A stretch of DNA of 64,000 nucleotides from Squalus acanthias (GCA_030390025.1 JASTWF010000810.1:62001-126000); one strand, 5' to 3'; shown: positions 1-36,667, numbered from the stretch's first letter. The notes: generated from the letters alone by a model not told the origin. A program made the numbers and translations.

Positions 1-686
1 GAGATCTCAGAAAGGCATATATACAGGCAGTTTCATTTTTTCTTTCAACCAACTGATTCCCTGTTCACTGAGATTAATTTTATTCCTTGAACCCAATCCA
101 ATCCCTATGGCCAGAATTCAATATAAAGGAAAATCGAGTGCAAACCTGTTGTCTATTCTCTAGCGCCCATTTTGCGCTATCGCTCAAGACGAATTTATAC
201 CCGATGAAGATTAAATGCACATTCCTATTAATTTTCAAATAACTCAAGTTACTGATACTTGAGCGATCACGGTGTTGTGATTAAGGATTTATCTATCAAT
301 CGTGAAAACGCTTTAAATCCAACATTTTCCAAAGCTGCATAGAATTCAAGCAGCACAAAACAGCAACTACGAAATAGAAGTCCGAACACGAATCGGTTGC
401 CTGGCCTTTGAACGGCTGGGACCTGTTAGAGCAAAGCTTGGGCGGCGTGTCAGTGGGTTTTTAGAATCTATTTCATCTGCAGCTTCAAAAATAAGGCGAA
501 TGGGGCAGACAGACAGGAGCCCGCTTCTAATTCATGCTGGACGTTAGTTGCTAACTATTTCTAAACTGGGGCTCCCCACCCTTCTTCTAAGAATAGTTGC
601 AATTATTTTCCCAGTTACTGATGTTAGGTTAATGAGCATCTAGTTAGTTAAACACAAATAAAACGGGTTCCGCATTGGCGCAAATA

Positions 687-854
687 TTACTTGGCTTTTC
701 CTTCCGTTAAAATAACGTCTGCTCTTTGATTTTTCATCTGTAGCTGAGCATACTCCGTGCTCTTATCCTTAAAATTAGGGTTTGCTGTTTTCTTCGAGCC
801 TGTCATGTCGAGAGCAGCGTAGGTCAACTTATTATCAGGCCCCCTTTGCTTGGT
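687..854 (-). CDS. Exon 7, terminal cytoplasmic exon [55 protein letters not shown]
   Basis: Acceptor tttcacag, ITIM LTYAAL and ITSM-like TEYAQL, stop TAA. Confidence 0.88.
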   Translation of the reverse strand, partial: TKQRGPDNKLTYAALDMTGSKKTANPNFKDKSTEYAQLQMKNQRADVILTEGKAK

Positions 855-3800
855 CTGTGAAATCAATATTTGGAAATATCATTACTTCGACATTGTACTT
901 GTTTATAGTCTAATATTTAGCAATTTCATTGGAATAGCTGGATCCTCGCAGAAATAGCGAGGATATAAATGATGAATTAAATATAAAAGATTACCATAGT
1001 ACTATTCAAGGTCTTTCTTACACTATCCTGCATGCCCATTAATTACAGTTAATCTTTGTCTCTTTGTTCTGCTCCCCAGCCCTACCTGGGCATACACTGT
1101 CCTCTCTTGATGCTTTGGTCTTGGACCTTTCCGGGACTTGGTCAGATCTAATGTGGCATAAGGCGTCATCACTTCGGCTGGTCCCTGCATGGGAGGAAGG
1201 GCAAAACTATATTTTGTTATGGTGTTAGGGCAGATACCGCGGTTCGGCGCTCCCTGCACAGAACGATGCGAGCAGGCCCTAAAACCGCAGATTCAGAGTC
1301 CATCCATTAAATGGATGGATGAAATATCAGTCACTGCTGCCAGAACCTTCTTGTCTGTGCTCCGTGTCCGCGCCGTCAGTGCCCAGCAGGCGGAATCAGT
1401 CGCATTATCACAAATATTCGAACAGTTTGGGGGAGGGTGAAAGAAGGTTTCTTCTTTACCGCCTGGACCTGAAGCATCGTCAGGGCTGCGCATGGATTGG
1501 AATATCTTGCGGAGCCGCTGCTGGCAACAGACCCCGCGCATTTTCCTAAAATTGAATCGAATGCAAAGAAATTCCCTCGGGACGAGCGATCCTCTCCACT
1601 AGATCTCCCTTTCTGCGCTCCGCCCATGCATTGCTTAACGCCCAGACGGTAAAGACGAAAATCTACCTCCAAAAATGCGCGGTGCTACAACCGGTCTCCT
1701 GATCTCACTTTGCTGGGTGACCACTAGAAGCCCCATAGAATCTGTGTAATAGGCTGAAAGTGCCCTTTAGGTTGTGTGTCTGGGAATTCCACGGGTGTCC
1801 CGCCGAAGTTACGGAAATCCCTAGAAATTTACATTTTAAGAAAGTAAAGAAATATAAGGGATCAAAGTTCATCCCTGAATTCCATTGATAGGAGTAATCT
1901 AGTTGAAATAACCTTCATCTGGCAAGGTTTTCATACTTGAAATTACACTTTCGTTGCAAAAAATATAGTAAAACCATTTAACTCCTTTAGAACATTGAGC
2001 TTTAGGCATAATGGTAAATGTGCATCGTAGTCATACAATGGATGGAATTGAATTAGCACAAGGAGACAGAAAGGGGTCTGGGGTTAATAGCAGTCAGGTC
2101 ACTTTCAATGTCCAGAAAAGTAAACAACGAATAGAATTCTGGAATCAAGGATAAGGACATGGAATACAAGAGATTATATTAAAGCTTGTCATTGAGCTTC
2201 TGGCCTACACATAGAATCTTTTGTTCAGCTTTTAATTCATCCACAATGTCACAATATCTATATATATATCTATATTTATATATTTCTATCTACATCAATG
2301 TCCAGCTGTCTTTCACTCTAAGGTAGACCCTGATGACTCAAGCACGGAGATGAATTAGAACTAGGGATACAAATGGAACACAAATATCGAACAGATATCA
2401 GGAAAAACATATACAATGAAAGAATCAGATTTGCTTGGAATAATTCTCTTGGTGTGCTCGAAATTTCGCGGACGCTTCCCGCGATCGGTAATCACATGCT
2501 GCAGGCGGTATATATTGGAACATCTCAATTAATGCCAACTCGTTTCTGTCCATTGATTTCAATACGTAGGAGATTGCGGGAAAATAACCCTCAATTTTCC
2601 GATAAGCATCTCCGTGCTTGCTTGGTCTCACGGCCTGTGCGGTGAAGCAGCAAATTCCGCCCAAGGAGGTGAAGGTTGGGCGTTGACATTGGAGGTTTTC
2701 CGATTTCAGTTGGATACTATGACGGGAGAATGAGGCGACTGAAGGGAATGCCGATTAATCGTCACCTATCTACTCGTCTTCTTAATATTTCGGCAAATTC
2801 ACCCAAAATTCCATCGCTGTGCTCTGGGCGCACGCGGACACAAGAAATAGCTAAACTGGCACCGTCAGCCTATGACATTGTGCCGGATTTTGTATTAATT
2901 CTCGAGATGTGGGCATCGCTGGCAAGGTCGGCGTTTATTGCCCATCCCTGGTTTCCCTCAGAAGTTGGTGGTGGTGGGATTCAGAGGAGACTGCAGGGGG
3001 AAGTTGAGAGTCAACCACCTTGGTGTGGACTGCAGTCACATACAGTGCAGACCGGGTAAGAATGGCAGGTTTCATTCCCTAACCGAAATCAGTGAACCAG
3101 TTGGGGTTTTAAGACAACCCCACAGCTTCAGATAACATCATTTATTTACAGATTTTGAAAACTGAATTCAAAATCTCAAATTACAATGATAGGATTTGAA
3201 CTCGCGTACTCTGGATTAAGTTCAGAGTTAGTTAATGGGCACAGTATTATGAACTACCGCCAACATACTGTCTGCTGTATCCAGGAGGCAAAAACAGTTT
3301 TAATTATTAATTACGGTTGATGGTAACTTTTAATCAATATGCTTATTCGCCATCAGCAGATGACATTTACAATTCAGCTGCTTTGAACTATTTACGAAGA
3401 TCGTTGCCATAAGTGCTGAATTCAATCTGCGCTATTTTTGTATGAATCTTTAGAGCAATAGATTTTAACGTGACAAATTATTGCTTTAAATAGATTAAAA
3501 CTGTTATGTATATGTTTATATCTGAGATATATTAGAATGAATCATGCACATATACCGGCTGTTCGCGATAGTCGGATCTTTCGCCATCGTTCTGTGCTCC
3601 TGGTAATGAATGAAGTTCAGGACTTTACAATGAGGCATTTACTCAGCCTGGAAATACACTTCGGGTAGATTCAATATAAAGTATAACATGATCTAGATAT
3701 CACATTTTAAGTATTTGTTGTTTTCCGATCTGTTTTTGACAATTGATTTTTCAGATGCGGCTGGGGCCTCGGAAGCTGCGCGATCCTGATTGGAAAATCG

Positions 3801-6800
3801 CGGGGACACTACCCACAATTCTACGTTCATTGACCCGAATGAGCGTAAACTGGCAATCAATGAAAAGTGATTGTCCAAAAAAGATCACGCTAGTCTCTGC
3901 AGATGGCTGGGGTAACTCGGAAAATTCCACCACATTTTAGAAATTCGAATCTACCGCTACACCGGTAGTGATTAAACCCATATTCAATACATCAGGTGCT
4001 GCAATTTGTGTAAATATAGCAGACTGGGGTGACTGTGAAGCGTCCGGTATAGTTTAAACCCCAGGATACAATGTTATGTTCAGCAACCGCCCCTGTTCCT
4101 GTGAGACAGAGTAAAAGCTCTTTGAAACGTTCAGTTGCAATCAACTAACTTTCTCTCTACATTTAAAATGAAGTTCTCGCTCACCCTCTCTTTGAAAACT
4201 GTTTTTACTTTAGTAAAGAATCTAAATTATGTCTTACCTTTATTTTTCTTTGAGACACATTGCTTCCCAATGATGACAGCCAGCACCAGGACTACCAACC
4301 CGCCCCCTGCACTTGCACGAATCAGCAAGTAATGGATGATCTCACCACCTTCAAGATTGAGATGAAATATATCAATATAAAGACCTACACTGTTCAATTC
4401 AATGAGACAATGACTTAAAAATCAGAAACATTAAAATATTTTAAATAATTTTTGCCATTTATTTTTTATATTAAGGTACAATTTTATGAAACAAAATAAA
4501 AATGTTGGTCTTTGTTTAATTTTGCATGCTTAAAGAATAGTTATTTTACTTTATCTTGGCTGAAACTCAACTGTGATTGTATCCTTGTTTCTTCTTGAAA
4601 TAAGACTGCGATATCAGCGGTTAATTCTGACATTGTGCATTACTGTAAAATGGGCGAGAACCAATCGGCAGATTGATTTACATTAATCCCCATTTTTATT
4701 CCCACTGAATTCAGTGCGATCATGTTTAGTTTATTGTTGTATATGACGGCTAAAGACGGCAGTTGCTAAATGTACATCTTGCTGAAGATTACAGATCGAT
4801 TTAAGCAAAGCTGGAGACAGCGGTCTAGCTCCGGCATGTTGCGACTTGGAACCACAGGGTGCGAGTTACTGCGGGATACTGCCCCACACGTCAGTTCCAC
4901 ACCTCGACCGTGACTTCCACTGGGGCAGAAGATGTCTAACAGCAGTTGCAGAGACCATGGAGCACAACACCTGGCAGAACGCCGCGGATAATGGTATCTG
5001 AGTAAAAGTAAACAAATGATGGGGGGATGGATCACAGCAAACCGTTTACTTGCACGATAATTGAGATAGATAAACCAGTTAACTGCAATCTAATGTTAGT
5101 AGTGAGAAAATTACTAGAGATTCTTGGTATTCTGTCTCGGAGAAGCATGATGAATAAGGGACAGCCAACATGTATTTGTTAAATGAAAATGATGTCTGAT
5201 TAACCTGATTGAGATCTTTAATGAACTAACAGAGGTTTGATGAAGGTCGTTGAGAAGATATATGGATTTTAAAAAGTCATTTAATAAAGTAGCTCATAAT
5301 AGACTTATTCGGCAAATAGAGGCGCATAGAATTTTAGGGATGGTGGTACCTTGGGTACTTCATTGGCTATGTGATAGGAGGTAGAGTGTGGTGGTGAAAG
5401 AATGCCTTTTCTGACTGGAGAGAATTATGCAGTGGGTTCTCCCATGGATAGGTCTTAAAACCAATGTTTTATATGATATGCCGAAAGGACCAGGACTTGA
5501 ATACAGGGAATAATATTTTGAAGTTTGCAGATGATGCAAATTTGGCAACGTAGTACATAGTGAAGAGGATAGTAGCAGATTTCAGCAGGACATAGATAGA
5601 GTGGTGAAACGGGCAGACACATGTCAGGATCAATTTAACGCGGGCATGTGAAGTGTGCACATTGGGTGGAACAACATGGAGAGGCAGTATAATCGAAATA
5701 GTTCTATTTTGAGGGGCTTACAGAGGCAGGGGAACTGGGGTGCATATTGACAAATCTTTGAAGGTGGAAGGGTAAGACGATAAGATGATTAATTAAGCAC
5801 ATTGGATGACTGAGTTTGTAAATAGAGGCCGTGAATACAAAAATAAGGAAGTCATGCTAAACTTTACAAATCACTGGCTAGCCCTCAGCTGGAGTACTGT
5901 GTCCAATTCTGTGCACCACAATTTAGGAAGGATGTCAAGTTCTTGAAGAGGGTACGGAGGAGGTATAGCAGGATGATAACAGTGATGAGCGCCAGCAGTT
6001 ATGTAGAGAGATTGGAGAAGCTAGGATTATTCTCACTATAGCATGGAGGATTAAGGGGATACCTAATAGAGAAATTCAAAATTATGAGAGGCTTTGATGG
6101 AGCAAGTAGGGAGAAATTGCTTCCACGGGAAAATGGGTCCGTAACCATCAGTCATAGATTTAAAATTATTGATTAAAAACTAGAGGCGGATTGAGGAGAA
6201 TTATTTTCTCACGAAGTATTGTTCTGATCCAGAACGCATTATCAGAAAGGTTGGTGGAACCAGTTTCCGTCGGAATTTTCAAAAGGCAATTGGACGTGTA
6301 CTGGAAGAGGACTACTTTGCAGAGTTATGGGGAAAAAGTTGGTGTGGGCATTAAATTGGACTGCTCTTTCAAAGAGCCCGCACAGGCACGCCGGGCCTAA
6401 TAATCTCTTTCTCTGCTGTAAGATTCTATGATTCGATCTGAAATATTACCTGTGTTCGTGTTTTGGACAATGTGAGTGGCCGTGGCTGAAATTTCGAGGG
6501 TACTGTGAGACACCAGGCAGGTATAAACGGTCCCGCTTTGGACAGCCTGCGTCTCTTCCAACCGGCTGGAAGCTTCATATAGTCCATCGGTGTTTGGTTG
6601 ATTAGTGTTATTTATCCTTGTTGTAATTTTGGTTCCATCCTTATACCAAGTGAAGCTGATATTCTGCGGGTAAAAGGGAGATGTTGTGCACAGTAGAGTC
6701 AGAGACGCAGCTGAATCCTTTTCGGGTTCCTGAGAGACAATTTTCAGTGGAGTTGGCGGAACTAGAAAAATGGAGGAAAAGAATGTTACATGGACATCAT

Positions 6801-8272
6801 TCAAGGTTACCAACCCATCGTCTTTTTTCCAGCCCATTCCTGACAGCACAATGTGGGCGGGGGGTTGGGGTAGTGGTGGGGGCCTTGTGTTCACTGTGCG
6901 CTATTGGTACCTACATCGTAAACGGCATCTTCATAAATGTCAACGTTATATCGGCGGTAATTTTAACTGCTTTCCCCCGGCGAAAACCGGATTGCAGCGA
7001 ATAGGCCGCCATTTTACTGCTCGACGATTTTCTTTTCTAATGTTAAAGAACATTGAGTGTGGTGTATATCGGGTTGCCGATTCACTGACGCTTGTTTTGC
7101 GGTACATCTGCGGACCAATTCCATCCCGTTGAGCATAACATCTGATGAGGAAGTATAATTTACCCAAGATAGAGGGGCTATGGCACGAAGGTCCGGTGCG
7201 AAACCTTATTTGCTGGAGGCTTCAATGTTGATTAAAATAAGGGGTACGAGGGTCAAGCTACAGAGTGCAGACATTGACCGTTAGCAATTTGGCGTTCAAA
7301 GGTCTTAACATACAGAACATTAAATTATGAATGTGAGAATCTGAGTACAATGTAAACAGTCTGCCCTCCGTAACTAGAGCAGAAAAAAACAGTAACTAGG
7401 GTAAGATCGGTGCTTACAGTGGCGGATACCCGCTCCTATCCATTATACAGACCCTTAACGGACACTGCAATTTTAAACTCAAACGCTTATTGTATACATG
7501 CTTACTGTGTAATTCGGATGAATCCGATAATGCTCGTCTTGATTAATATTGTTGAAATATTTCAATACATAGTAGCATGTAACGTGTAGCAGTCAACAGT
7601 GCAATTTGAATATATACACATAAAACGGCCGGAATTTAAGTTGTTTTTGAATCCTACAAAGCACAATCGTGAATTTCTTCGAAGTGGGAAATATTACAGT
7701 CACATGGATCTCATTTGCCGCTTCTTTTATACTTACCCCAGATAGCTAAATTGGATCCCGTTCCGTTTCCAACTATTTTGCCTCGATGGTCGACAGTGCA
7801 ATAATATACACCCGAGTCCTCGACACTCACATTGATGATCTGAAGGAAGCCGCTGAATTTAGTTTTGGATCCATTTACTTTTCTGTCATCAGGTCCTATG
7901 CTTAGATATTTATTATCACCCTGTTTCCACCAGTATAGGTTCACCCGTGGTCCATCTTGAAAGAAGGGAATCGAGCAATGAAAGGAAACGTTTGTACCCT
8001 TGATTCCGCTCGCGCTTTCAGGGAGCTGAGTCACTTTGAGCGAAGTTTCGCAGGAGCCTATCGGAAAAGAAAATCAAAACCGAATTAATGAGAATATTAC
8101 AGGAGAAGAAGCGCGATGGTAAGTAAGTCAGGCAATGTGTGCAAAGGACAATGAAACAAACAATGTTAAGCAGCTATGCGTTTTAGCGAGAAAGCAAGGT
8201 TTAGAAACAACAGGTACCTGTGAACATGAATCCCAGAACAGAGAGGCACTGAAGTACAGCACTCGCCAACAT
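687..8272 (-). CDS. Multi-exon IgSF immune receptor, leader-V-C1-TM-cytoplasmic ITIM/ITSM tail (NCR3/SIRP-like), 369 aa; exons 8272-8218, 8057-7737, 6761-6450, 4348-4238, 3599-3556, 1184-1086, 854-687
   Basis: All introns are GT..AG with consistent phases (1,1,1,1,0,0). Exon lengths 55+321+312+111+44+99+168=1110 nt give one open frame ending at TAA 689-687. V-set and C1-set motifs, hydrophobic TM and tyrosine motifs are all present. Confidence 0.88.
1086..1184 (-). CDS. Exon 6, cytoplasmic [33 protein letters not shown]
   Basis: Acceptor cccttcctcccatgcag, donor CAG|gtaggg, two Tyr motifs. Confidence 0.88.
2895..3260 (-). mobile_element. SINE-like element sharing its tail with the LINE fragment at 25247
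   Basis: tgggcatcgctggcaagg...tttattgcccatccct is shared with the end of the 25247-26030 element. Confidence 0.55.
3556..3599 (-). CDS. Exon 5, short cytoplasmic exon [15 protein letters not shown]
   Basis: Acceptor ttcattcattaccag, donor CCG|gtatat. Supplies the phase 1 to phase 0 change needed to join exon 4 to exon 6. Confidence 0.7.
4238..4348 (-). CDS. Exon 4, transmembrane exon [37 protein letters not shown]
   Basis: Acceptor cttgaag, donor AAG|gtaaga, phase 1/1. Hydrophobic span followed by basic stop-transfer residues. Confidence 0.88.
5160..6433 (+). mobile_element. Degenerate 5'-truncated CR1 LINE in intron 3 of the receptor
   Basis: KFADDA-like RT remnant, LEYCVQF-coding segment, ttctatgattc tail ending ~16 nt from the C1 exon donor. 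Confidence 0.85.
6450..6761 (-). CDS. Exon 3, C1-set Ig domain
   Basis: Acceptor tttttctag, donor G|gtaata. [21 protein letters not shown]...[10 protein letters not shown]...[10 protein letters not shown] are C1-set signatures (FYP, TW, YxCxVxH). Confidence 0.95.
7737..8057 (-). CDS. Exon 2, V-set Ig domain with germline-encoded J-like G strand
   Basis: Acceptor ttttccgatag, donor G|gtaagt. Translation LKVTQ.PES...VSFHC...LYWWKQ...[16 protein letters not shown]...[11 protein letters not shown] contains Cys, Trp, DSGxYYC and GxGT. Confidence 0.95.
8218..8272 (-). CDS. Exon 1, signal peptide [18 protein letters not shown]
   Basis: agaATG start, hydrophobic core, phase-1 donor ACAG|gtac. A homologous 55-nt leader exon exists in the paralogue at 36237-36291. 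Confidence 0.85.
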
Positions 8273-8357
8273 TCTGAACCTATTGATCACTCGGAAGGAC
8301 AGACCGTGAACTAGCTGATGGTTTGTCAGCACGTTGAAGAGCCGGAGAATGAAATAC

Positions 8358-8375
8358 GTCACGCTGAAGCGTGAC
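8358..8375. promoter_or_regulatory. Palindromic GTCACGC-TGAA-GCGTGAC, candidate Pax2/5/8 paired-domain site in the receptor proximal promoter
   Basis: Contains TGAAGCGTGAC, ~90 bp upstream of ATG 8272. Motif match only. Confidence 0.4.
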
Positions 8376-8992
8376 ATCCTGTCTATGTGTTCAGAACATG
8401 TATTTTTGTCCCTTTGGTGAGATTTGCTGAAACAGTTCTACATGCGCCAGAAGAGGCGCCAGTTCTCAATTTTAAGTTTCTACACACACAGATGGAGCGG
8501 CCTCGCCGCGGGCCCTCCAACTCTAAGGAAAGCTAGGAAGTAAAGGTCATGCACTCGTCCTGGAACATTCCATATTTCAGTGCTCTGCGCATAGAATTTC
8601 CACGGTGTTCCCTGACGGAAGATCGGCGGAATCTGCCGAGATTGGCGAATTCTGGCTGTTACTTCGTTTGTGCTGGGTTTCCCTTTATCGCCCGGCGAAG
8701 ATACGGCTGGAGATTGTGAGGATTGCGCCAAAGTTCTCCCTCAGTGTCCTCCGCCATTTCGGATCAGGCAATAGAGATGTTTCGGACAATGCTGTAGGAA
8801 ATTCTGAAAGATTTAAAGCACTACCACCCGTAAATTTATTGAGTTATCTCCAGATCTCCCGTGATGGATTGGCAGACTGATGCAAACAAATCAGAAACCA
8901 CGTGTCGCGTTGAATACGGCCGTTTATGCCGTTTTTACGTGCCACATTTTAATTTCTTGATTGGTAACAGTAGCTGCTAGACTAGGAACGAC

Positions 8993-11900
8993 TAGAACAT
9001 AGAAACATAGAAGTTAGGAGCAGCAGTAGTCCATTCGGCCCCTCGAGCCTGCTCCGCCATTCAATGCGATCATGGCTGATCATCCCAATTCAGTACCCTG
9101 TCCCTGCTTTCTCCCCATATCCCTTGATCCACTTATTCTTAAGATATATATTGAACTCCTTCTTTAATATATTTAATGAATTGGCCTCAACTAGCTTCTG
9201 TGGTGGAGAATTCCACAGGTTCATCAGTCTCTGGGTGAAGAAATTCCTCCTCATCTCAGTCCTAAATGGCTTGCCACTTATCCTTAGACTGTGACCCCTG
9301 GTTCCAGCTCCCCCGCCATCGGGAACAGACTTCCTGCATCTAGTCTGTCTAGTCCTGTTAGAATTTTATAAATTTCAATGAGATCCCCTCTCATTCTTCG
9401 AAACTCTAGCGAATATAAGCCTAATCGACCCAATCTCTCTTCATACATCATTCCTGCCATCCCAGGAATCAGTCTGGTGAATCTTCGCTGCACTCTCTCC
9501 ATGGCAAGAACATCCTTCCTCAGATAAGGCGACGAAAACTGCACACTATACTCAAGGTGTGGTCTCACCAAGGCCCTGTACAACTGCAGCAAGACATCCT
9601 TGCTCCTGTACTCGAATCATCTCGCTATGAAGTCCAACATGCCATTTGCCTTCTTAAACGCCTGCTTCACCTGCATGCTTACCTTCAGCGACTGGTGCAC
9701 AAGGACACCCAGGTCTCGTTGCACTTCCCTTTTCCCAATCGCTTGCCGTTCAGATAATAATCTGCCTTCCTGTTTTTGCCACCAAAATGGATAACCTCGC
9801 ATTTATCCACATTATACATAGGGTCTAATGAGAGGGAGGAATTGAATGAAATCAGTATTTCTAGGGAAATGGTGTTAAGGAAATTGACGGGATTGAAGGC
9901 CAATAAATCCCCAGGGCCTGATAATCGACATCCTAGGGTACTTAAGGAATTGGCCTTAGAAATAGTAGATGCATTGCTGGTCATCTTCCAAAATTCTATA
10001 GACCCTGGAACAGTTCCCTTGGATTGGAGGATAGCTAATGTAACCACACTATTTAAAGAAGTTGGTAGAGAGAAAACAGGGAATTATAGACCGGTAAGCC
10101 TGACATCGGTAGTGGGGAAAATGGTAGAGTCCATTATAAAAGATGTAATAGCAGAGCACTTGAAAATAGTGACAGGATCGGACAAAGTCAACATGGATTT
10201 ACAAAAGGTAAATCATGCTTGACTAATCTACTGGAATTTTTTGAGGATGTATCTGGTAGAATAGATAAGGGAGAAACAGTGGATGTGGTGTATTCGGACA
10301 TTCAGAAGGCATTCGATAAGGTCCTCATAAGAGATTAGCGTGCAAAGTTAAAGCATACGGGATTGGGGGTAAGGTACTGTCTTGGATAGAGAACTGGTTG
10401 GCAGACAGGAAGGAAAGAGTTGGAATAAACGAGTCTTTTTCCGAGTGGCAGGCAGTGACTAGTGGGGTACTGCAGGGATCGGTGTTAGAACCCCTGCTAT
10501 TCACAATATATATACATAATCTAGACGAGAGAACTAGATGTAATATCTCCAAGTTTGCAGACGACACAAAGCTTGGTGGGAGTGTGTCCTGAGAGGAGGA
10601 TGCAGAGAAACTCCAGTATGAGTTGGAAAGGGTGGGTGATTGGGCAGAAGCATGGCAAATGCAGTATAATGTGGATACCTGCGAGGTTATCCACTTCGGT
10701 GGCAAAAAAAGGAAGACAGATTATTATCTGAACGGCAATAGATTGGGAAAAGGGGAAATGCAACAAGACCTGGGGTTCCTTGTGCACCAGTCGCTGAAGG
10801 TAAGCATGCAGGTGCAGCAGGCGGTTAAGAAGGCAAATGGTGTGTTGACCTTCATAGTGAGTAGATTCGAGTACAGGAGCAAGGATGTCTTGCTGCAGTT
10901 GTACAGGGCCTTGGTGAGACCACACCTTGAGTATTGTGTGCAGTTTTGGTCCCCTTATCTGAGGACGGATGTTCTTGCCATGGAGAGAGTGCAGCGAAGA
11001 TTTACGAGACTGATACCTGGGATGGCAGGAATGGCATATGAGGAGAGATTGGGTCGATTAGGCTTATATTCGCTAGAGTTTCAAAGAATGAGAGGGGATC
11101 TCATTGAAACGTATAAAATTCTAACAGAGCTAGACAGACTAGATGCAGGAAGGATGTTCCAGATGGCGTGGGAGCAGAGAACCAGGGGTCACAGTCTAAG
11201 ATAAAGGGGTAATCCATTTAGGACTGAGATGAGGAGGAATTTCTTCACCCAGAGAGTGGTGAACCTGTGGGATTCTCTACCACACAAGGCAGTTCAGGCC
11301 AATTCTTTAGATATATTCAAGAAGGTGTTAGATATATTTCTTAAGGCTAAAGGGATCAAGGGATATGGGGAGAAAGCAGGGACAGGGTACTGAATTTGGA
11401 TGATCAGCAATGATCTCATTAAATGGCGGAACAGTCTCAAGGGGCCGAATGGCGTACTCCTGCTCCTATCTTCTATGTTTCTATGTTTCTATCTGCATTG
11501 CATCTGCCCAATCACCCAACCTGCACAAATCATACTTGAGTTTCTCTGCATCCTCCTCACAGCACCCACGCCCACCCAGCTTTGTGTCGTCTGCAAACTT
11601 GGTTATATTAAATCTAGTTCCCTCGTCTAGAACATTTATATATATTGTGAAAAGCTGGGGTCCTAGCACCGATCCCTGCGGTACCCAACTGGTCACTGCC
11701 TGCCACTCAGAAAAAGACCAGTTTATTCCAACACTTTGCTTCCTTTCTGCCAACCAGTGTTCTATCCAAGTCAGTACCTTACCCCCAATCCCATGGGCTT
11801 TATCTTTGCACGCTAATCTCTTATGCGGGCCCTTATCGAAAGCCTTCTGAAAGTCCAAATACACCAAATCCACTGTTTCTCCCTTAACTATTCGACCAGT

Positions 11901-15356: not shown

Positions 15357-16128
15357 TGTAAGATTTCGGATCACAGGTCACACACAGATTACCCAAAGGG
15401 TCTTAGGAGTCAATGGCCATTATATTAAGAGCGGCAGTTCAAATATAGTTAACTTAGGATAGACATAGTAGACATACAACCCGTAACAGATGAGAACGGT
15501 TTACAGGCCCGGGAACGGATGGAGGGACGGACCGACGGAGGTTGGCGCAGAATGTTAGTCCTGGATCCATGCTGCCTGCGGCAGAAGTCTCTTCCTCTTG
15601 TTTATCTTCCGAGCTCGTGGAGGTGTTCAGCCGAAGCTAGCATGGAATCTACTTTCAGAGTTTAAACTTGACCAGGGTGTTAAGCCGAAGCTAGCATGCA
15701 TCCACCTCGGGTATCCACACTTTTTTCCTGCCTTTCCCTCTCGGTTGCCCATTTATATATCTTATTTTAGGGACTGTTGAAAACCTCACGCCAATCACTT
15801 GTTTTAATCAACTTTACCCATTCAATTGTCCATTTACGGAGGAATGTGCACCTGTAGCACATCCCTCCCAATCTTACGAGATCATCCCTTTGCATATCTC
15901 TTGCACTTTCTCCTAGACAACTTGTTTATCTTACTGATCCCCTTATCAGCCCTAGTTCAGCCCAGTCGAAGGCCTGTTTTGTGTTATGACCTTGGAACGA
16001 CCTCAGCTCTTTCTACAATCGCTGTATCAGCAGCTTATCCTGGCTGCTCAGCTCGGATGAGCTTATTTGTTTTATAAAGCCATTATTTCTTATGATTCAC
16101 AATTTCTTCCAATTCACGATTTCTTACA
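15357..16128 (-). repeat. 3' LTR
   Basis: TGTAAG...CTTACA terminal inverted repeat, preceded on the minus strand by the purine tract aaagtggggaat (16129-16140). Confidence 0.9.
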
Positions 16129-16449
16129 ATTCCCCACTTTGCGAAGGAAATATACTTATTGACTTCTCACAGTCTTCTTTGACTAATCTAATTAGTTCTT
16201 ATTGCTCTCTCAATTTGCGAGTTCGTTCGTCGGCCGTCTCAGAAATGAAGATTTCCCCCATTCTTACAATCCATATTTTGAGGGGGAATAGCAACCTCTT
16301 ACCCTTCACACAGGTTCCATTCACGGTTCCAGTGTTCCAATTCTGCCCCACCTGGGGTATCCTTCCTGATTTTACCCCGCCTGGGGTCTCCCCTACATTG
16401 CTTCGGATCTTCTCTTTCGGTGTGCTCCATTAATTTGTTAGTGCTGGTT

Positions 16450-17500
16450 TGTCATAGGCATGAGTACACGACTGGCTTTTGCATCAAACTCTTGCTACAC
16501 GGGTTACATATATCAAGTAAACTGTCATTACAAGTTGGAGAACTAACAAAGTATCAGAAATAATACGAACCTTAAGGGTGTGCTGATATATTAAGCTCAA
16601 TATCCCACCAGTGTGAACTGTCCCCTATGCTGTCAATTTCAATATCTATTCTCGAGTTGTATTTCTCCAAAACATAAAAATGCTTTAGGGAGGAGTTCAG
16701 TCGCATCACGAGCTTACAAAAGCCCTCAGACAAAAGAGGAATGTCGTACCCAATTGTCCACATAATTGTACAGCTCCTACTTAATTATCTCATTTACTGT
16801 CAGTTTCACTTGAGCATAGGTTTGATACTGAGTAAAACGTGTTGGTTGATGTGGTGTGAAGTAGAAACTGGGACTATTAATGGGACAGGTCCTGTTAGAC
16901 AGGTAGCAGTGACACAGGAGGCACCACCAAACCCACCTGATTCTGGTCTCGTACTGGTTTTTCCCACGCTCTGTGTTACCTACAAACCACAATTATTACA
17001 GTTACAAGTTATGATTCATTCTTACAATCATTAGCACATCGACCAAGTAGATACATTTCAAGCGGCAATGATGCAGACATACTGAGCCCGAGTAAAATTT
17101 TATCAGTTCGAACTTATCCCAAGTCCAAATAGCATAATTGTTTGACTGACAGGTTTTGCCAATCTTCAATTTTATTTCCCCACAAACTTTCTTCATTGAT
17201 CACAGCAAATGGCAGGACCACCTAGACTGCTCTCAACCAGTTTATTTTAATGAAAATTTAATTACCCCCTTCAACTTCAGGTAGATTTCCTCTTCTTGTG
17301 CCTTACCTTATCAGCTCCAATTTCAGAAACAAGTGATTCCCAGGCTAGGTGGTTTACATGGTATTTTAACATTAGAGACAGAAGTGCTGCTATTTGTTTA
17401 CAAGGTAACTTCCATATAACAAAATAAAGCAGAGAATCCATTGTGGAACTGCTTAAGAGCTCAAGGGGTTAATTCGTCAAATCATAATAGTCCTTTTGTC
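16450..17500 (-). pseudogene. env: env remnant (Cys-rich ectodomain, heptad region, WW membrane-proximal region, TM)
   Basis: Frameshifted pieces WCLLCHCYLSNRTCPINSPSFYFTP, KLVMRLNSSLKHFYVLEKYNSRIDIEIDSIG, HWWDIELNISAHP, VRIISDTLLVLQLVMTVYLIYVTR, lying just upstream of the PPT. Confidence 0.65.
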
Positions 17501-18239
17501 ACTGCGGGGAAATATTCAATTACAATTAAGAAACTTAAATTTAATAAGGTCCAATATCTTAAAATTTCATTCAGCCATACAAAAGTTGCTGTGTGGTAAA
17601 AAAAAAACAGTTGTTAGCAGAAATGGTTAACTCCTTGGCAGGTTTGTCAGAAGATGGAGCACATATTGTCAGACGCACACAATTGCGTCACTTCACCTAA
17701 ATTTAAAAAAAAAAAATCCCGGTCGAAAAAGACAGTTGGGTTTTGACAATTTAATAGGTTCGTTTACTTCAATAATTCCAATTTAATTCAGTCCAATATT
17801 TTATCAACTAAACACGATACAACACATAAAACAGAACAAAAAAGCACCTGCTTGCAGAAAGCAGTAAATTACATCATATTTCTTATTGTCCTTTTTTCAG
17901 ATGACTTTCTAAGTGACTGTAAAAATACTAAATATAACTGGAGAAAAAATAGTTGTTTCACATTTAAGCAAACGTTATACATTCTACACAAAAGGAAAAA
18001 GAGGCGGAGCTTTCCTCAGCTTGTAGCTTCGAAACATTCATAGTCAGGGAAACTTCTGCACTGTAACACAGACTTTCACACAATCTGAAATTCCAGCATT
18101 TCTTTTAAGGTTCCTATCACTCAGCAATTTTGAGTTTTATTTTTCTCGGCACAGAAGCTGAACGTTTCAGTGTCCGTTTCAACTTTAAGTTTTCTTTTCG
18201 CCTTTGAAATTGTCTCAGCAACTTATTCCCTACTCCACT

Positions 18240-18810
18240 GGTGGCTCGAATATAGGGCATACTCTCGGTTGGGTAAGAGTACTGCTTTACGGGAGCATGT
18301 ACTGGTTCGTTAATTTCTTCAGGTTCAGTCATGTTGCCACAATCATGCTTATGGGTTGCGAATACACCCGGCGCTGACACTAGGATACCCTGTACCTCGG
18401 GGTCATTAATTGCGAATACTGAGTGCACGCTAGACACCGGAGTAGGGGGTCCGTTTTTAAGATTCCACCAGATACAATTGTTGACATAATCAATTACTGC
18501 TCGATAACTTTTGAGCACATCACTTCCCAGTAGTCCCTGCTCATTATGCATGGCCATATAAATGGGAGACTGGACCGTGACTCAAAACCTGTCCAAGTTT
18601 AGCTCTAAGGGAACGCATGCTTGAATAGTTGCCTGGGTTCAATTGTCAGAGCCCGATAAAACTTGGGGCACTCCTTTCATAGGGGCGGGGTGGGGATCCT
18701 GAATGATGCTGGCTGAGGAACCAGAGTCAACTAACGTTAATTGCTGACGGCCTCCAGGATCAACAGTGCGGACTAACGGTCTCTGTACACTAGCGTATCG
18801 GAGAGGGGAA
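18240..18810 (-). pseudogene. pol: Retroviral aspartic protease and start of RT, remainder of pol deleted
   Basis: RPLVRTV...LTLVDSGSSASII...GLLGSDVL, then VFATHKHDCG...PVKQYSYP. In-frame stops; no RT core or integrase seen. Confidence 0.8.
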
Positions 18811-18811
18811 A

Positions 18812-20558
18812 TCATCTCTCCCTCAGAACCCTGCAGGAGTCACAGGGGAGGTGAACGATCTGCCACTTGCTCGGTTGTTGATGCACCGCGGCAACCGGTC
18901 GAGCCCCTTGACTAATCTGCATGGCCACTATCGCTGCTTCCATTCTCGCCAAACTCTGCTCCATCGAGTCGGAACCAGTGTGTTTCAGAGGAATGCGGCA
19001 GTAATGGGCACATTGGCCTCGGTGATTGCAAAGATAGCAGCGTACCGGAGCTCCCTTCTCTGGTGCAGGGTTTTTTAGACGGCCCTGATTTCTGGCCGAG
19101 TATTGGGCCTTCGACGGCTGCCATTTTAACTTTGGTGTGTACTCTGGGAATATTGGCACCTGTCTGCTGCTAAGCAGTCCCGAAATGGGTGCACAGCTCT
19201 TCCCGGGCTATGGACTAAAGGGTGGAGGCCGTTGAAAAAGAGGGTTTTGAGGCCCGGGTAGTTAAAGGAGTCACCTCTGCCATCCCTATTGCACTGAAAA
19301 ATGTCTTTCGGGAGGGACCTGCTTGGTACTAGCTAAGAGTTGGTGGAAGTCGATTCACTCCTCCCCTAATGTTCTACATAAGTCCATCTCAATATCATGT
19401 ATCGCACCCGCCTCCAGAACATCCTGATCCATCTGTTGCTTTAATTCTGAGGAACACACAGCCAGGAGGACCTGTTTATGGTCGCCCCCTTTTAGTTCTG
19501 GATGAGTGTCCTGAAAAATCCTCCACCGCTGCCTGAGGTCAAGGGGTCTGGTGTTCATGTCTATCGTCCCTAGGTCATCCTTTAGAGCCCTAACCTCAAC
19601 AGCGGTAAGGAGCTTATGCGTGGTTGTGGTGACCATTGCCCCCTCGTCGTTAGTGGAATAGGATGGTTGGACACCTCCCACCTCCTCGTAATTCTGGTGC
19701 TGAGGTTGACGGGCAGCATTGCCCAGGTGACGACACACACTGGTATTGCCTTGTTTGCTTTGTTTGCCTCGCCATCCTTGTACGGTGCAGGAGGAGCAAA
19801 GGGGGTGGGGTCCTCAGCTACGTTGTCCCAACAAGGGACTGGATGTCTTGGTGTGATTTTGGAGACAGCTACCACGACTGCCCGCTGTTGTCCGATATGT
19901 GCCTGAAGCTGTTGGATTTTTGCTAAACACGGTGCGTGATCTGCTTTGGGGGAGGCGATGGGTTGGCACTAGTCTAACTCCCTCAGAGCCCCCCTTGCAT
20001 CTTCTAACTCCTCACCTAGCCGGGTATTCTCTGCCTGTAACTCGATATTTCGTTCTAATATTTGTTCCAGCTTTTTCCGTTTATAATGCGCCTCGTCATG
20101 TCCTTTCTGTTCCCACTGCAACTGATTGTGTAGGACGGCAATGCTTTCCTGCCAACCTTCGCTTTCTTTCTGCAGCGTATCTGCCTGTTCTTTTAACTCT
20201 TTTTTTCTTTTTTTAACTGCAAGGCGCACAAGTGTGCTCCGTAGGCTAACTTATCTCGGCCTTTTTTCAGCTTAAGCTTGGGTTTCTGGACGTCCTCAGA
20301 AAGTCTTTCAAGAATGCAATCATAGTTCCCAGCAGACTTCTCTAGAATTCTTAGAATGTTCGTCGCCCCAGGCGCGCTGTTATTCTCTGTCAGGCTATCT
20401 ATCAAGTGTTCCCGGTGATATGCCAGCGCCATTGTATATCTGGTTTCAATTATTTGACACTTTCCCTCTAACTCTCTCAGAGAGTTCCATACCCAGTCTA
20501 AGCGTCGATCATGCACGGTCGACCAAGACTTCCCGGCTCTCACAATGCCGAGGTCCAT
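18812..20558 (-). pseudogene. gag: Disrupted gag: coiled-coil N-terminal region, capsid-like region, degenerate CCHC knuckle
   Basis: Consecutive ORF fragments 20558-20193, 20229-19969 (heptad-rich), 19738-19355 and 19159-18812 (RCYLCNHRGQCAHYC). Confidence 0.75.
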
Positions 20559-20575
20559 ATGACTCCCGCTATGTT

Positions 20576-20593
20576 ATCCCACTTCTGACACCA
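20576..20593 (-). other. Primer-binding site complementary to the tRNA-Leu 3' end
   Basis: TGGTGTCAGAAGTGGGAT, 1 nt inside the 5' LTR; complementary to ATCCCACTTCTGACACCA of vertebrate tRNA-Leu. Confidence 0.9.
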
Positions 20594-20594
20594 C

Positions 20595-21308
20595 TGTAAG
20601 AATTCGGATTGCAGGCACTCACAGATTACCCAAAGGGTCTTCGGAGTCTTAGGGCATTTTATTAAGGAGCGGTAGTTTAAATATAGTTAAATCAGGATAG
20701 ACATCGTAGACATACAACCCGTAACAGGTGAGAACTGTTTACCGGCCCGTAATGGACGGATGGACGGAGGTTAAGGCAGAATGGCAGTCTAGGATCCCTG
20801 CAGCCTGCGGCAGCGGTCTGTTCTTCTTTGGTCATCTTGCGAGCTGGCAGAGTTGTTAAGCCAAAGCTAGCATGCATACATCCCGGGGAAGCTATACCCC
20901 CTTTCTGCCTGCCTTTCCCTCTCGGCTGCTCGTTTGTGTACCTTATTTGAGGGGCTGGTGGATACCTCACGCCAACAATTGCTTTAATCACCTTTACCCA
21001 TTCAATTGTCCATTTACGGAGGAATATGCACCTGTAGCACAACCCTCCCAGTCTATCGAGACCATCCCTTTGCTTATCTCTTGCACTTTCTCCTAGATAG
21101 CTTGTTTATTTTAATCAACCCCTTATCAGCCCGAGATATGCCCACTCGAAGGCCTGTTAGGTGTTATGACCTTGCAACGACCTCAGCTCTTTGTACAACA
21201 GCTTTATCAGCAGCTTATCCTGGCCGCTGATCTCGGATGAGCTTATTCATTTTATACAGCCATTATTGCTTATAATTCACAATTTCTTCCAATTCACGAC
21301 TGCTTACT
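20595..21308 (-). repeat. 5' LTR
   Basis: Diverged direct repeat of 15357-16128, adjacent to the PBS. Confidence 0.9.
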
Positions 21309-32500: not shown

Positions 32501-33068
32501 CAACCCCCTGCCACTTTAGTTTAAACCCTCCCCAAACAGCACTAGCAAACACTCCCCCTAGGACATCGGTCCCGGCCCTGCCCAGGTGCAGACCGTCCCG
32601 TTTGTACTGGTCCCACCTCCCCCAGAACCGGTTCCAATGTCCAAGGAATTTGAATCCCTCCCCCTTGCACCATTCTTCTAGCCACGTATTCATTTGAAAT
32701 ATCCTCCTATTTCTACTCTGACTAGCACGTGGCACTGGTAGCAATCCTGAGATTACTACCTTTGAGGTCCTCTTTTTTAATTTACCTCCTAACTCCCTAT
32801 ATTCTGCTTTTAGGACCTCATCCCGTTTTTTCCCTATATCGTTGATGCCTATGTGCACCACGACAACTGGCTGTTCGCCCTCCCCCTCGAAAGTGTTCGG
32901 TAGCCGCTCCGAGACGTCCTTGACCCTTGCACCAGGGAGGCAACACACCATCCTGGAGTCTCGATTGCGGCCGCAGAAATGCCTATCTATTCCCCTTACA
33001 ATTGAATCCCCTATCACTATAGCTCTTCCACACTTTTTCCTCCCAGCCTGTGCAGCAGAGCCACCCAT
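29535..33068 (-). CDS. CR1 ORF1 SGNH esterase fused to ORF2 (AP endonuclease + reverse transcriptase), 1177 aa
   Basis: VIGDS/HIGIND/DGLH (esterase); NARS, ITETW, GDFN, SDH (APE); GVPQGS, FADD (RT). Confidence 0.95.
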   Translation of the reverse strand: MGGSAAQAGRKKCGRAIVIGDSIVRGIDRHFCGRNRDSRMVCCLPGARVKDVSERLPNTFEGEGEQPVVVVHIGINDIGKKRDEVLKAEYRELGGKLKKRTSKVVISGLLPVPRASQSRNRRIFQMNTWLEEWCKGEGFKFLGHWNRFWGRWDQYKRDGLHLGRAGTDVLGGVFASAVWGGFKLKWQGVGNLSRETEEREIRIKAKDRKEKNKSRRQRTQRFKSNMVTVNNNSYRFESVKKTSLKALCLNARSIRNKVDELDAQIEVNEYDLIGITETWLQGGQGWELNIQGYSIFRKDRQKRKGGGVALLVKEGINTIERKDISSDDAESVWVELRNNKGQKTLVGVVYRPPNSNTEVGDGIKREIREARSKGTSVIMGDFNLHIAWANQISKNTVEEEFLECLREGFLEQYVEEPTRDQAILDWVLCNEKGLISNLVVRGPLGQSDHNMIEFFIRMESEVVESETRVLNLNKGNYDGMRRELGRIDWGMSLKGLTVDRQWQTFKDCMDELQNLYIPVWHKNKIKRVTQPWLTREIRDSIRSKERAYKLARKSSSPEDWEQFRIQQRRTKGLIKKGKIEYESKLAGNIKTDCKSFYRYVKRKRLVKSSVGPLQSEAGEVIMGNKEMAAQLNAYFGSVFTKEDTNNLPEMLENIRSDEREELKEISICREMVLGKLTVLKADKSPGPDNLHPRVLKEVALEIVDALLIIFQHSMESGTVPMDWRVANVTPLFKKGGREKAGNYRPVSLTSVLGKMLESIIKDVIAEHLKNSDRIGQSQHGFTKGKSCLTNLLEFFEDVTGKIDKGEPVDVVYLDFQKAFDKVPHKRLAGKVKAHGIGGKVLTWIENWLADRKQRVGINGSFSEWQAVTSGVPQGSVLGPQLFKIYINDLDKGIKCNISKFADDTKLGGSVCSEEDSEKLQDDLDRLGEWAEAWQMQYNVDKCEVIHFGVKNRKADYYLNGNRLGEGEVQRDLGVLVHQSLKVSMQVQQAVKKANGMLAFIAKGFEYRNRDVLLQLYRALVRPHLEHCVQFWSPYLRKDVLAMEGVQRRFTRLIPGMAGMTYEERLGRLGLYSLEYRRMRGDLIETYTILTGLDKLDAGRMFPMVGESRTRGHNLRITGKPFRTEMRKNFFTQRVVNLWNTLPRKVVEAKSLNIFKDELDIFLKATGIKGYGEKAGTG

Positions 33069-33104
33069 GGTGCCAGGAAGTTGGCTGCTGCCGCCTTCCC
33101 CTGA

Positions 33105-36236: not shown

Positions 36237-36667
36237 ATGTTTATAGCTGGGGTACTTCAGTCCATATGAGTCTTCGGGATTATGTGCACAGGTATTTTCT
36301 GTTGTTCTATTTCTCTCCCTCCCTCTCCTCTCTTTTTCTCTGTCCATAATTTGCCCGTGCATTCCATTATCATGTTGTATTTATAATTATCGTTGTGTTT
36401 CCTGACAGTTGCTATTGATGCTCAGTTCCGAGTCTCCCAAGCTCCTGAAAGCACGATAGTGCTCGTGGGTTCAAACATTACATTCTATTGCACATTCCCC
36501 ATTTTTCAAGATAACTCAGATGTTAGTGTTTATTGGTGGAAACTTGGCGCAACTTTCTGTATACAGCAGGAAAATATTTCTGCATTTTAAACAAGGAGGA
36601 GCCGCCTTTCATCTCCTGAACATCAGTGCGCCGGACTCTGGGGTCAATTACTGCGGAGTGAGAACAC
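36237..36667 (+). pseudogene. Pseudogene paralogue of the V-C1 receptor (leader exon 36237-36291, V exon from 36409)
   Basis: Leader MFIAGVLQSI*VFGIMCT aligns with the gene-1 leader but carries a TGA. V exon FRVSQAPES...NITFYCTFPIFQD...VYWWK is frameshifted to LLNISAPDSGVNYC and cut by a CR1 tail. Confidence 0.9.

Follow-up and report, generated by a model that had tools for sequence, protein, structure and literature searches.

We analysed a 64-kb stretch of Squalus acanthias DNA (the window, from whose first letter all positions are counted) and identified a V–C1 receptor gene on its minus strand, spanning 8272..687. The gene comprises seven open exons with matching phases and GT–AG borders (gt at the start and ag at the end of each of the six introns), in the order split leader, VJ, C1-set, TM (transmembrane) and three tail exons, all of them on the minus strand. 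The leader exon (8272..8218, 55 nt) begins with the ATG at 8272-8270 and carries 18 codons and the first base of a Gly codon before a gt donor; 14 of its 18 residues (77.8%) were identical with those of the Heterodontus relative P0153 in a tblastn comparison. It forms the first half of the split leader, and an intron of 160 nt separates it from the VJ exon (8057..7737, 321 nt, phase 1 to 1). Downstream lie the C1-set exon (6761..6450, 312 nt, phase 1 to 1), which begins with VPPTPLKI and contains VYTCLVSH, and the exon for the stalk, transmembrane and juxtamembrane segments (4348..4238, 111 nt, phase 1 to 1), matched in tblastn by P0153 and P0017. The tail is encoded by the cytoplasmic exons cytA (3599..3556, 44 nt, phase 1 to 0), cytB (1184..1086, 99 nt, phase 0 to 0) and cytC (854..687), the last with its coding part at 854..690 and the TAA stop codon at 689-687. 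The match that revealed cytA by tblastn, between GVRNDGERSNSPKQ of P0153 and the 14-residue cytA, was weak when taken alone (E 4.3), and we accepted this exon because its borders (ccag|GA and CCG|gtatat) and phase fit the gap between the TM and cytB exons. The exon lengths add up arithmetically to 1110 nt, equal to 369 codons plus the stop, and an AATAAA is present at about 84, 602 nt past the TAA.

Identity to annotated shark proteins was 66-82% and covered every exon; a chance origin is excluded because of this identity together with the Pfam domain matches and family HMM scores given below. The structure of the gene is thus established, and the original prediction of a complete, phase-consistent seven-exon gene at 687-8272 held, with all elements found in place on the minus strand. 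Outside this gene, nothing but repeats, an open frame of the Maestro-HEAT type and a V remnant was seen in the window, which includes a decayed family member at 36.2-36.7 kb. LINE debris was observed within the introns of the receptor gene. None of the transcript runs listed contains the stretch, and three runs compared with it returned only repeats and one 466-nt contig, which is 93% alike over 6466-6729 and represents the product of a paralogue.

The types of both extracellular domains were established by profile analysis. The VJ exon matched the Pfam V-set (1.2e-9) and scored 148.7 bits with the family V HMM, and the C1 exon matched the Pfam C1-set (1.8e-16) and scored 154.9 bits with the family C1 HMM. 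In Pfam the second domain was clearly C1-set rather than I-set (60.7 vs 14.1 bits), and it contains the C1 hallmarks FYP...W and YTCLVSH; no further C1 exon was detected in the 64-kb window, leaving 6761..6450 as the sole one. The VJ exon carries the expected Cys (FHC) and Trp (YWWKQG), a DSGVYYC motif, a J-like G strand and four N-x-S/T sequons, one of which (GNGT) falls within the J-like strand. The YYC motif (7806-7798) shares this exon with the J-like strand, whose 11 residues (7770-7738) end at the G|gtaagt donor of the VJ exon. Written as N-GTGSNLAI, the strand matches G-x-G-(T/S)-x-L-x-(V/I) and follows the family consensus GNGTGS.L.V, with Asn at the position of the Phe/Trp in rearranging J segments; the J consensus given in PMC2442602 is FGXGTXLXV. 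We scanned positions 1-9000 on both strands for RSS-like sites, defined by a heptamer with CAC fixed and at most one mismatch, a spacer of 12 or 23 nt (±1) and a nonamer with at most two mismatches, and found none; a single isolated CACTGTG occurs at 6892, inside the V–C1 intron. In other family members, the V-only public models continue past the J-like strand into 'GK(Y/C)' because they read through this same G|GTAAGT donor, and VJ is therefore one genomic frame in other species too. These results bear out the earlier reading of a VJ unit in one exon, with neither an RSS nor a separate J segment, and support its description as a non-rearranging, antigen-receptor-like VJ–C1 membrane protein.

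Analysis of the remaining exons revealed a stalk without Cys and a hydrophobic segment with an Arg codon (CGT, 4319..4317) in its outer part. The nearest relatives have Ser at this position in the alignment (YLLISASAGG in P0153, P0160 and P0158). The tail contains four tyrosine motifs: TPYATL (1166-1149) and TVYAQ (1100-1086, with Thr at Y+3 once spliced, TVYAQ|T) in cytB, and LTYAAL (827-810) and the ITSM-like TEYAQL (758-741) in cytC. Only LTYAAL, one of the four, fits the strict, canonical ITIM pattern. The tyrosines form two repeated units of two tyrosines each, spaced by 22 and 23 residues; cytB and cytC match each other as diverged duplicates, and the family consensus shows the four-tyrosine pattern as well. 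Of the 78 TM-bearing family members, 35 have one or more [ILVST]xYxx[ILV] motifs, and 24, mainly short-tailed ones, have a charged residue within the core of the TM segment. In other receptor families a charged TM residue marks the activating members. The four tyrosine motifs of its tail lead us to predict that the receptor is inhibitory, but given the Arg in its TM segment, an inhibitory rather than an activating signal cannot be taken as certain.

To place the gene among known proteins, we searched with its V exon using HMMER in an exhaustive search, which gave 470 proteins at E<=1e-3. Both V and C1 were present in 98 of the 222 retained proteins, and the 90 named ones among these 98 were all chondrichthyan, from 20 species including Callorhinchus. 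A profile search, which sees only proteins sharing exact words with the query, returned 70 chondrichthyan matches at E<=1.7e-49, followed by Mdga1 (2e-4) and an NCAM1-like protein (4.6e-4). The automatic NCBI/RefSeq names of the relatives conflict, ranging over SIRP-alpha-like, Ig lambda-1 light chain-like, tapasin-related-like and NCR3LG1-like. The closest relative by blastp was the Heterodontus protein P0160 (82% identical in V and 80% in C1), and the tail exons were similarly conserved, cytB being 81% identical to Heptranchias P0166 and cytC 76-78% identical to P0166, P0168 and P0158. In the C1 tree the gene fell into a clade of 21 rows (SH-aLRT 99) and in the V tree into one of 17 rows (support 98), each with sharks and batoids inside. 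The gene possesses all of the family motifs (YWWK.G, DSGVYYC and GNGTGS.L.V in V, VYTCLVSH in C1), as well as the exon order and the tail units, and both YWWK and the Asn in the J-like strand run through the entire family, as far as Callorhinchus. Membership, taxonomic range and conservation are established by these data. As judged from the searches and trees, the gene is one member of an old and large multigene family restricted to sharks, rays and chimaeras, as the original prediction of a cartilaginous-fish multigene family had it, and it sits in a subfamily common to sharks and rays. Our searches of open-access papers returned no description of this VJ–C1–TM family, which seems to have gone without a formal description so far.

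The affinity of the family to better known receptors was assessed with its profiles. Over the V–C envelope, the family profile scored 68.4 bits with a human Ig lambda chain, 63.3 with kappa, 62.8 with SIRP-alpha d1-d2 and 59.1 with the V–C1 part of UrIg2; since these scores are nearly equal, the gene was assigned to none of them. The best full-length V matches of the V-only profile were TCR, shark V-NAR, Ig lambda and CD79b (47-56 bits). Neither UrIg2 V nor SIRP d1 appeared among the best 60 matches of this profile, which end at 46.4 bits, and NKp30 was outside both these and the best 60 PDB matches of the V exon, which end at E 1.9e-6. The NCR3-like component of the original prediction was thus not borne out, and RNA gave no backing to its NK/myeloid assignment. 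SIRP-like features of the family were supported, in the form of a V plus C1 ectodomain, four tail tyrosines in two units and, for many members, NCBI names of the 'SIRP-alpha-like' type. NKp30 is not known to possess a C1 domain or an ITIM tail, and we rejected NKp30/NCR3 membership on the presence of the C1-set exon. PRARP has a C1-type domain and a TM segment; reportedly described by Fu et al. in 2019 as a non-rearranging VJ plus a C domain, it is set beside the shark gene by description only. NKp30/NCR3 and PRARP, given as non-rearranging VJ genes in PMC11599192 and PMC10751288, share with the shark gene a V domain of the joined VJ type. The NITRs are likewise a diversified germline family of V(J) type I receptors, similar to the shark family in layout. 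According to PMC2442602, most NITRs have ITIM tails and a minority a charged TM residue, they have been proposed as equivalents of NK receptors, and they occur in bony fish only, with a second domain of I-type that bears six conserved cysteines. Membership of the NITRs was rejected on the C1-set character of the second domain and the cartilaginous-fish host.

Taken together, our results make it likely that the gene encodes a germline VJ–C1 type I glycoprotein, a tyrosine-motif inhibitory receptor of an old chondrichthyan-only family. A different origin is conceivable, though on the doubtful side, in which an Ig light-chain gene, either rearranging or germline-joined like shark lambda, fused V and J and later gained TM and ITIM exons, so that the gene would be no pre-RAG relic; it concerns origin only, and the present-day function could be the same. 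Because the data are also compatible with an old light-chain gene, secondarily joined in the germline, that acquired its TM and tail exons later, the pre-RAG state suggested by the original prediction is not singled out. Ig and TCR typically have the motif W-Y/F-(Q/R)-Q, and where Ig has W-Y-Q-Q and F-GxG, the shark gene has YWWK and N-GxG. The layout of V, J and C1, the phase-1 introns and the split leader are those of an Ig light chain, but the gene departs from such a secreted, paired chain by a TM and three tail exons, kept in its relatives, and has no C-terminal Cys. Ig lambda was the top match of the V–C envelope, the V-only profile favours TCR, V-NAR, Ig lambda and CD79b, several members are auto-named 'immunoglobulin lambda-1 light chain-like' by NCBI, and the Ig lambda of cartilaginous fish has its V and J wholly joined in the germline (PMC12227049). 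However, the margin over kappa, SIRP-alpha and UrIg2 is small, the 64-kb window holds no Ig light-chain exon, and the 528 nt that precede the ATG lack an Ig octamer. Furthermore, as YWWK and the Asn at the J Phe/Trp position are family-wide, Callorhinchus included, a derivation from an Ig light chain must predate the holocephalan–elasmobranch split.

It is rather unlikely that the genes are chondrichthyan orthologues or co-orthologues of SIRP, descended from a SIRP-alpha-type gene that lost one C1 domain and expanded. The SIRP-alpha tail has four tyrosines in two pairs and recruits SHP phosphatases, a layout that the two units of the shark tail would resemble, and in both proteins an N-terminal V domain, its G strand J-like, precedes C1-set sequence and a single-pass TM segment; the short-tailed family members with a charged TM residue are reminiscent of SIRP-beta. 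In addition to the d1-d2 score, SIRP-alpha d3 scored 45.6 bits with the family profile and 52.3 bits with the C1 profile, the automatic names often read 'SIRP-alpha-like', and SIRP-alpha clusters are among the nearest in the ESM Atlas (0.95-0.96, a lead only). On the other hand, SIRP has two C1 domains and the gene and nearly all relatives, including those aligned, have one; SIRP scores do not exceed those of Ig light chains, d1 is missing from the best 60 V-only matches, and no tetrapod or teleost SIRP was returned at E<=10 in the profile search among proteins with exact-word matches. The shark family is expanded and Chondrichthyes-restricted, and its sequence is no nearer to SIRP than to Ig light chains; the single C1 together with 62.8 bits against 68.4 for lambda and 59.1 for UrIg2 argues against nesting within bona fide SIRP. 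Membership of the UrIg/UrIg2 family is highly improbable. These are also cartilaginous-fish genes with a non-rearranging VJ followed by C1-type exons, and the single VJ exon and split leader of UrIg2 (PMC12227049) are present in the shark gene; UrIg2 (9dmx) ranked first in the PDB for both the C1 exon (3.6e-24) and the C1 profile (2e-25), with totals that sum over three UrIg2 C domains, of which the best single one gave 33.0 bits. Its V–C1 score, however, lies under those of lambda and SIRP, and its V is outside the best 60 V-only matches. According to that paper (Flajnik et al.; PMC12227049), UrIg, made up of VJ and three C domains, is secreted as a disulfide-linked dimer, and UrIg2 consists of VJ, 9-11 C domains and a TM segment. 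The shark gene, by contrast, encodes a single C1 domain, a Cys-free stalk and a tail of the ITIM/ITSM type; the text of the paper contains no occurrence of ITIM, SIRP or 'inhibitory'. UrIg genes are reported there in elasmobranchs, and the VJ–C1 family is also found in Callorhinchus. Finally, we regard it as distinctly unlikely that the gene, though intact, is silent because it arose by recent duplication in a cluster with fast turnover and is not expressed. The three transcript runs gave no RNA support, and the decayed member at 36.2-36.7 kb and the LINE debris would suit such a history; against it, all seven exons are open, the invariant family residues (both Cys pairs, both Trp and YxCxVxH) are kept, and the tail is as conserved as the Ig domains relative to its relatives, the pattern expected under purifying selection.

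For the germline inhibitory receptor that we favour, the product would have approximately 369 residues, with a signal peptide, a VJ domain, a C1-set domain, a short Cys-free stalk, a TM segment and a tail of approximately 112 residues. Displayed on the surface of whichever cell type carries it, the receptor would bind a ligand through its V domain, and engagement may lead Src-family kinases to phosphorylate the tail tyrosines, which could then recruit the tandem-SH2 phosphatases SHP-1/SHP-2. By analogy with SIRP-alpha, KIR-L and the inhibitory NITRs, nearby activating receptors would be damped. The V exon would never rearrange, and diversity would come from the count of germline paralogues. 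The gene thus resembles half of an antigen receptor, with one V and one C, but fixed in the germline and with a tail whose motifs suggest an inhibitory type. A wider and speculative reading, which we think unlikely, is that the family is a surviving membrane-bound signalling form of the VJ–C1 lineage ancestral to Ig/TCR, sister to or older than UrIg/UrIg2, present in all chondrichthyans including holocephalans and expanded into a paired (inhibitory and activating), germline-diversified recognition system. If this were true, the family would offer many more candidates for the type of exon that was split by the RAG transposon, and cartilaginous fish would have in it their first large family of NK-type receptors, the shark counterpart in role to the NITRs of bony fish and the KIRs of primates.

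The minus-strand V-C1 receptor gene (8272..687) was resolved by translating the open frames of positions 1–9000 and then setting the exon borders by script. On this strand it consists of a leader exon (8272..8218), a VJ exon (8057..7737), a C1 exon (6761..6450), a transmembrane (TM) exon (4348..4238) and three cytoplasmic-tail exons, cytA (3599..3556), cytB (1184..1086) and cytC (854..690, with the TAA stop codon at 689–687). The open frames alone revealed six of these exons, and the 44-nt cytA came from a tblastn search with the Heterodontus relative P0153, at an E-value of 4.3 that is weak alone; it has ag/gt borders and leads from phase 1 to phase 0, exactly the change needed to connect the TM exon with cytB. 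The gt...ag rule holds for all six introns (160, 975, 2101, 638, 2371 and 231 nt), and their phases (1, 1, 1, 1, 0 and 0) are consistent across all exons. The coding sequence amounts to 369 codons plus the stop, a total obtained by adding up the lengths of exons that were searched singly. The key claim of the original prediction, that V and J are encoded in a single exon, was borne out: DSGVYYC and the 11-residue J-like strand lie together in the VJ exon, which ends with G|gtaagt. The RSS (recombination signal sequence) had also been said to be absent, and a heptamer-spacer-nonamer scan of positions 1–9000 found none on either strand. The gene is confirmed as real, and it is intact. Neither an Ig-type octamer nor a TATA box was present in the 528 nt upstream of the ATG, which is a weak negative, and there was no Ig light-chain exon within the window.

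Pfam analysis assigned the V exon to V-set (1.2e-9) and the C1 exon to C1-set (1.8e-16), the latter with the C1 hallmarks SPFYP...FTWY and VYTCLVSH. The G strand reads N-GTGSNLAI and matches G-x-G-(T/S)-x-L-x-(V/I), given as the J consensus in a passage of PMC2442602, with Asn replacing the Phe of that consensus. The stalk is approximately 10 residues long and contains no Cys, and thus no site for an inter-chain disulfide bond is visible. TCR chains are linked by such a bond. An inter-chain disulfide is also described for UrIg in a section of PMC12227049. The tail of approximately 112 residues carries the motifs TPYATL, TVYAQ (the spliced next residue being Thr), LTYAAL and TEYAQL, and is built in part from cytB and cytC as diverged duplicates of one unit, which cross-match and have two tyrosines each, 22–23 residues apart. 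A search of the tail exon against the PDB gave two chance matches only (E 0.17).

An exhaustive HMMER search with the V exon against 1.84 billion representative proteins gave 470 matches at E≤1e-3, of which 112 reached E≤1e-10. Names were checked for 30 representatives, of which 27 were chondrichthyan and three were multi-V proteins of reptiles, matched only weakly (E 2e-12 to 1e-10). In two word-indexed searches, which require exact 5-residue words shared with the query and which distant relatives in other groups could therefore escape, P0153 alone retrieved 51 proteins, all chondrichthyan, at E≤1e-3 from 1889 candidates, and the 30-member family profile A1 matched 72 of 4991 at E≤10. The A1 matches comprised 70 chondrichthyan proteins at E≤1.7e-49, followed by bird Mdga1 (2e-4) and a teleost NCAM1-like protein (4.6e-4); the gap in E-value after the 70 proteins sets them apart as a discrete family. 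Residues 125–229 of P0153 yielded 22 candidates and eight matches, all family members, a set too small to inform.

When the family HMMs were applied to 222 stored proteins, both V and C1 were present in 98. Names were available for 90 of these, and all 90 came from 20 species comprising sharks, batoids and Callorhinchus milii; the rows without a name clustered with named chondrichthyan rows in the C1 tree. The automatic NCBI names conflict with one another, ranging from SIRP-alpha-like, SIRP-beta-1-like, Ig lambda-1 light chain-like and tapasin-related to NCR3 ligand 1-like, CD276, PD-L1-like, MHC class II alpha-/beta-like and TCR beta-like. Within each well-assembled species all members are on a sequence of the same size (99,651,266 bp in Heterodontus and 18,121,395 bp in Callorhinchus), and so they lie on one chromosome per species. 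Over 4835 protein pairs, identity was 38.2% for V compared with 41.7% for C1, with C1 higher in 72% of the pairs. Six public V-only models (P0018, P0027, P0078, P0088, P0104 and P0134) continue with G-K-(Y/C)... after the J-like strand. This extension is an annotation artefact produced by reading through the G|GTAAGT donor, and it shows that VJ and the donor share one genomic frame in other species too.

By blastp, the gene was nearest to Heterodontus P0160 (82% identical in V, 80% in C1 and 67% in cytB), followed by Heptranchias P0166 (77% in C1, 81% in cytB and 76% in cytC), and no protein at least 90% identical to it was found, so the species of the window is not one of those with annotated proteins. 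In the C1 tree (113 rows, none omitted) the gene fell in a 21-row clade with an SH-aLRT of 99, and in the V tree (157 rows) in a 17-row clade with an SH-aLRT of 98; both trees were built from approximately 105 columns by a quick method and left many forks unresolved. Sharks and batoids occur together in both clades, so the subfamily is an old one within elasmobranchs, with duplications specific to particular lineages. The gene is a real, intact and ordinary-looking member of a large family.

The window also contains, at 36238-36684 on the plus strand, the degenerate remains of another gene of the family, from a different subfamily, the N-terminal V half of which is 64% identical to Heptranchias P0017. 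The leader-like exon of this remnant is interrupted by an in-frame TGA at codon 11, its V exon is spread over two frames, and a repeat from approximately 36670 cuts off the G strand, with no C1 exon after it. Elsewhere, an unbroken 1189-residue frame at 29538-33104 (minus strand) contains a GDSL-lipase-like domain, an AP endonuclease and a reverse transcriptase by Pfam; it is a LINE copy in which both reading frames have become fused. Shorter pieces of reverse transcriptase are numerous throughout the window, and some lie in the intron between the C1 and TM exons of the gene. An intronless 1692-residue open frame at 57666-62741 (minus strand) encodes Maestro-type HEAT repeats (PF23210, 2.8e-184; PF21047, 3.5e-58), and long tandem repeats with repetitive open frames on both strands occupy 45838-46841, 49244-49603 and 62925-63999. 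The region 15357-21308 has minus-strand open frames at 18120-20573, of which 18120-18581 was scanned against Pfam and matched nothing at E≤0.001.

Three sequencing runs were matched by species label only, with a word share of 0.00 each, and over 2300-8290 their depth was confined to intronic repeats. Two of them also gave C1-exon contigs, one of 466 nt in X2 covering 6466-6729 with 19 of 264 positions different (93% alike) and one of 190 nt in X1 covering 6466-6535 with three of 70 different. At 93–96% likeness, these contigs come from paralogous C1 exons. No exon–exon joint was seen in the three runs, whose RNA or DNA nature is only guessed, and they have no bearing on expression.

For the comparison with known families, profile scores against the PDB stand in for a tree with NCR3, SIRP, TCR, IgL, tapasin and B7H6 references. 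Over the V-C envelope, A1 scored 68.4 bits with human lambda, 63.3 with mouse kappa and 62.8 with SIRP-alpha d1-d2, followed by 59.1 with UrIg2 V-C1, 45.6 with SIRP-alpha d3 alone and 40–46 with Fab heavy chains. The V-only profile A4 was made from the window V exon and 13 public V-only models, the six read-through models included; its best full-length V matches, with multi-domain I-set proteins set aside because their scores are summed, were a TCR scFv (56.1 bits), shark V-NAR (53.1), Ig lambda (approximately 46–50) and CD79b (47.0). SIRP, NKp30 and UrIg2 were absent from the best 60 A4 matches (cut-off 46.4 bits). With the C1 profile A5, UrIg2 scored 92.8 bits (summed over three domains), the lambda constant domain 67.6, C-mu 61.7, SIRP-alpha d3 52.3 and ordinary light chains 42–49. 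By these scores the V domain belongs with those of antigen receptors, and the C1 domain is about equidistant from IgL, SIRP, UrIg2 and IgH constant domains. In the ESM Atlas, used as a lead only, the nearest named clusters were 'kappa light chain-like' and SIRP-alpha, in agreement with the profiles. None of the known families stands out as clearly closest to that of the gene. The original prediction had placed it in a cartilaginous-fish receptor family mixing NCR3-like and SIRP-like features; this interpretation is supported in part. The cartilaginous-fish family stands, with V and C1 together in its proteins, and so do its SIRP-like features, but the NCR3-like part finds no support among the best 60 A4 matches.

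The domain layout departs from the definitions of several known groups. A single C1 domain goes against the definitions of SIRP and of UrIg, the TM and tail exons against that of an Ig light chain, and the presence of a C1 domain against those of both NKp30 and NITR.

The outer TM segment of the gene contains an Arg (codon CGT, 4319-4317, minus strand), combined with the long tyrosine-motif tail, which makes this copy unusual. An 'activating' sense of this Arg was set aside as the main reading, because the closest relatives have Ser in its place in the A1 alignment and the gene keeps the conserved long tail with its tyrosines. Arg at a similar TM depth is frequent among short-tailed family members. 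A TM segment was found in 78 of the 98 V-C1 proteins, and 24 of these 78 have a charged TM-core residue, mostly Arg. At least one [ILVST]xYxx[ILV] tail motif occurs in 35 of the 78 and at least two in 24, and the remaining 43, mostly short-tailed, have none, a class that incomplete gene models may inflate. Such a distribution of tails and TM residues is typical of receptor families that pair inhibitory with activating members. The gene product is most likely a surface receptor with a V domain that would bind a ligand, and its phosphorylated tail may recruit SHP-type phosphatases and so dampen activation.

How the joined VJ arose can be read in two ways. The VJ of the family may never have been split by RAG, and the data are equally compatible with an ancient re-joining of V and J in the germline. 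The latter has a parallel in the Ig lambda of cartilaginous fish, stated in part of PMC12227049 to be wholly germline-joined; a recent derivation of this kind, however, is argued against by the family-wide YWWK and N-GxG motifs, which are common to Callorhinchus. In PMC12227049, UrIg and UrIg2, which are non-rearranging and retained in elasmobranchs, are proposed as the best surviving relatives of the exon split by the RAG transposon.

No description of a chondrichthyan VJ-C1-ITIM family was found in the open-access literature, which was the scope of the search, subscription journals being outside it; the supplements of PMC12227049 (including table S1) and PMC10751288 may list such genes under automatic names. 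The terms SIRP, ITIM and 'inhibitory' have no occurrences in the text of PMC12227049. The family thus appears to be undescribed. If it has already been described in a subscription journal, the gene is simply a well-annotated member of it.

Non-rearranging VJ-C1 genes matter for the question of how Ig and TCR began, and the family of this gene is a much larger germline VJ-C1 set, present in sharks, rays and chimaeras, with signalling tails and a dozen contradictory automatic names. If truly undescribed, it would show that labels such as SIRP-alpha-like, tapasin-like, MHC class II-like and TCR-beta-like call for caution in shark immunogenomics, would provide more candidate relatives of the antigen-receptor precursor, and would be a candidate for a diversified system of inhibitory and activating receptors in cartilaginous fish, akin to NITR, KIR and SIRP.
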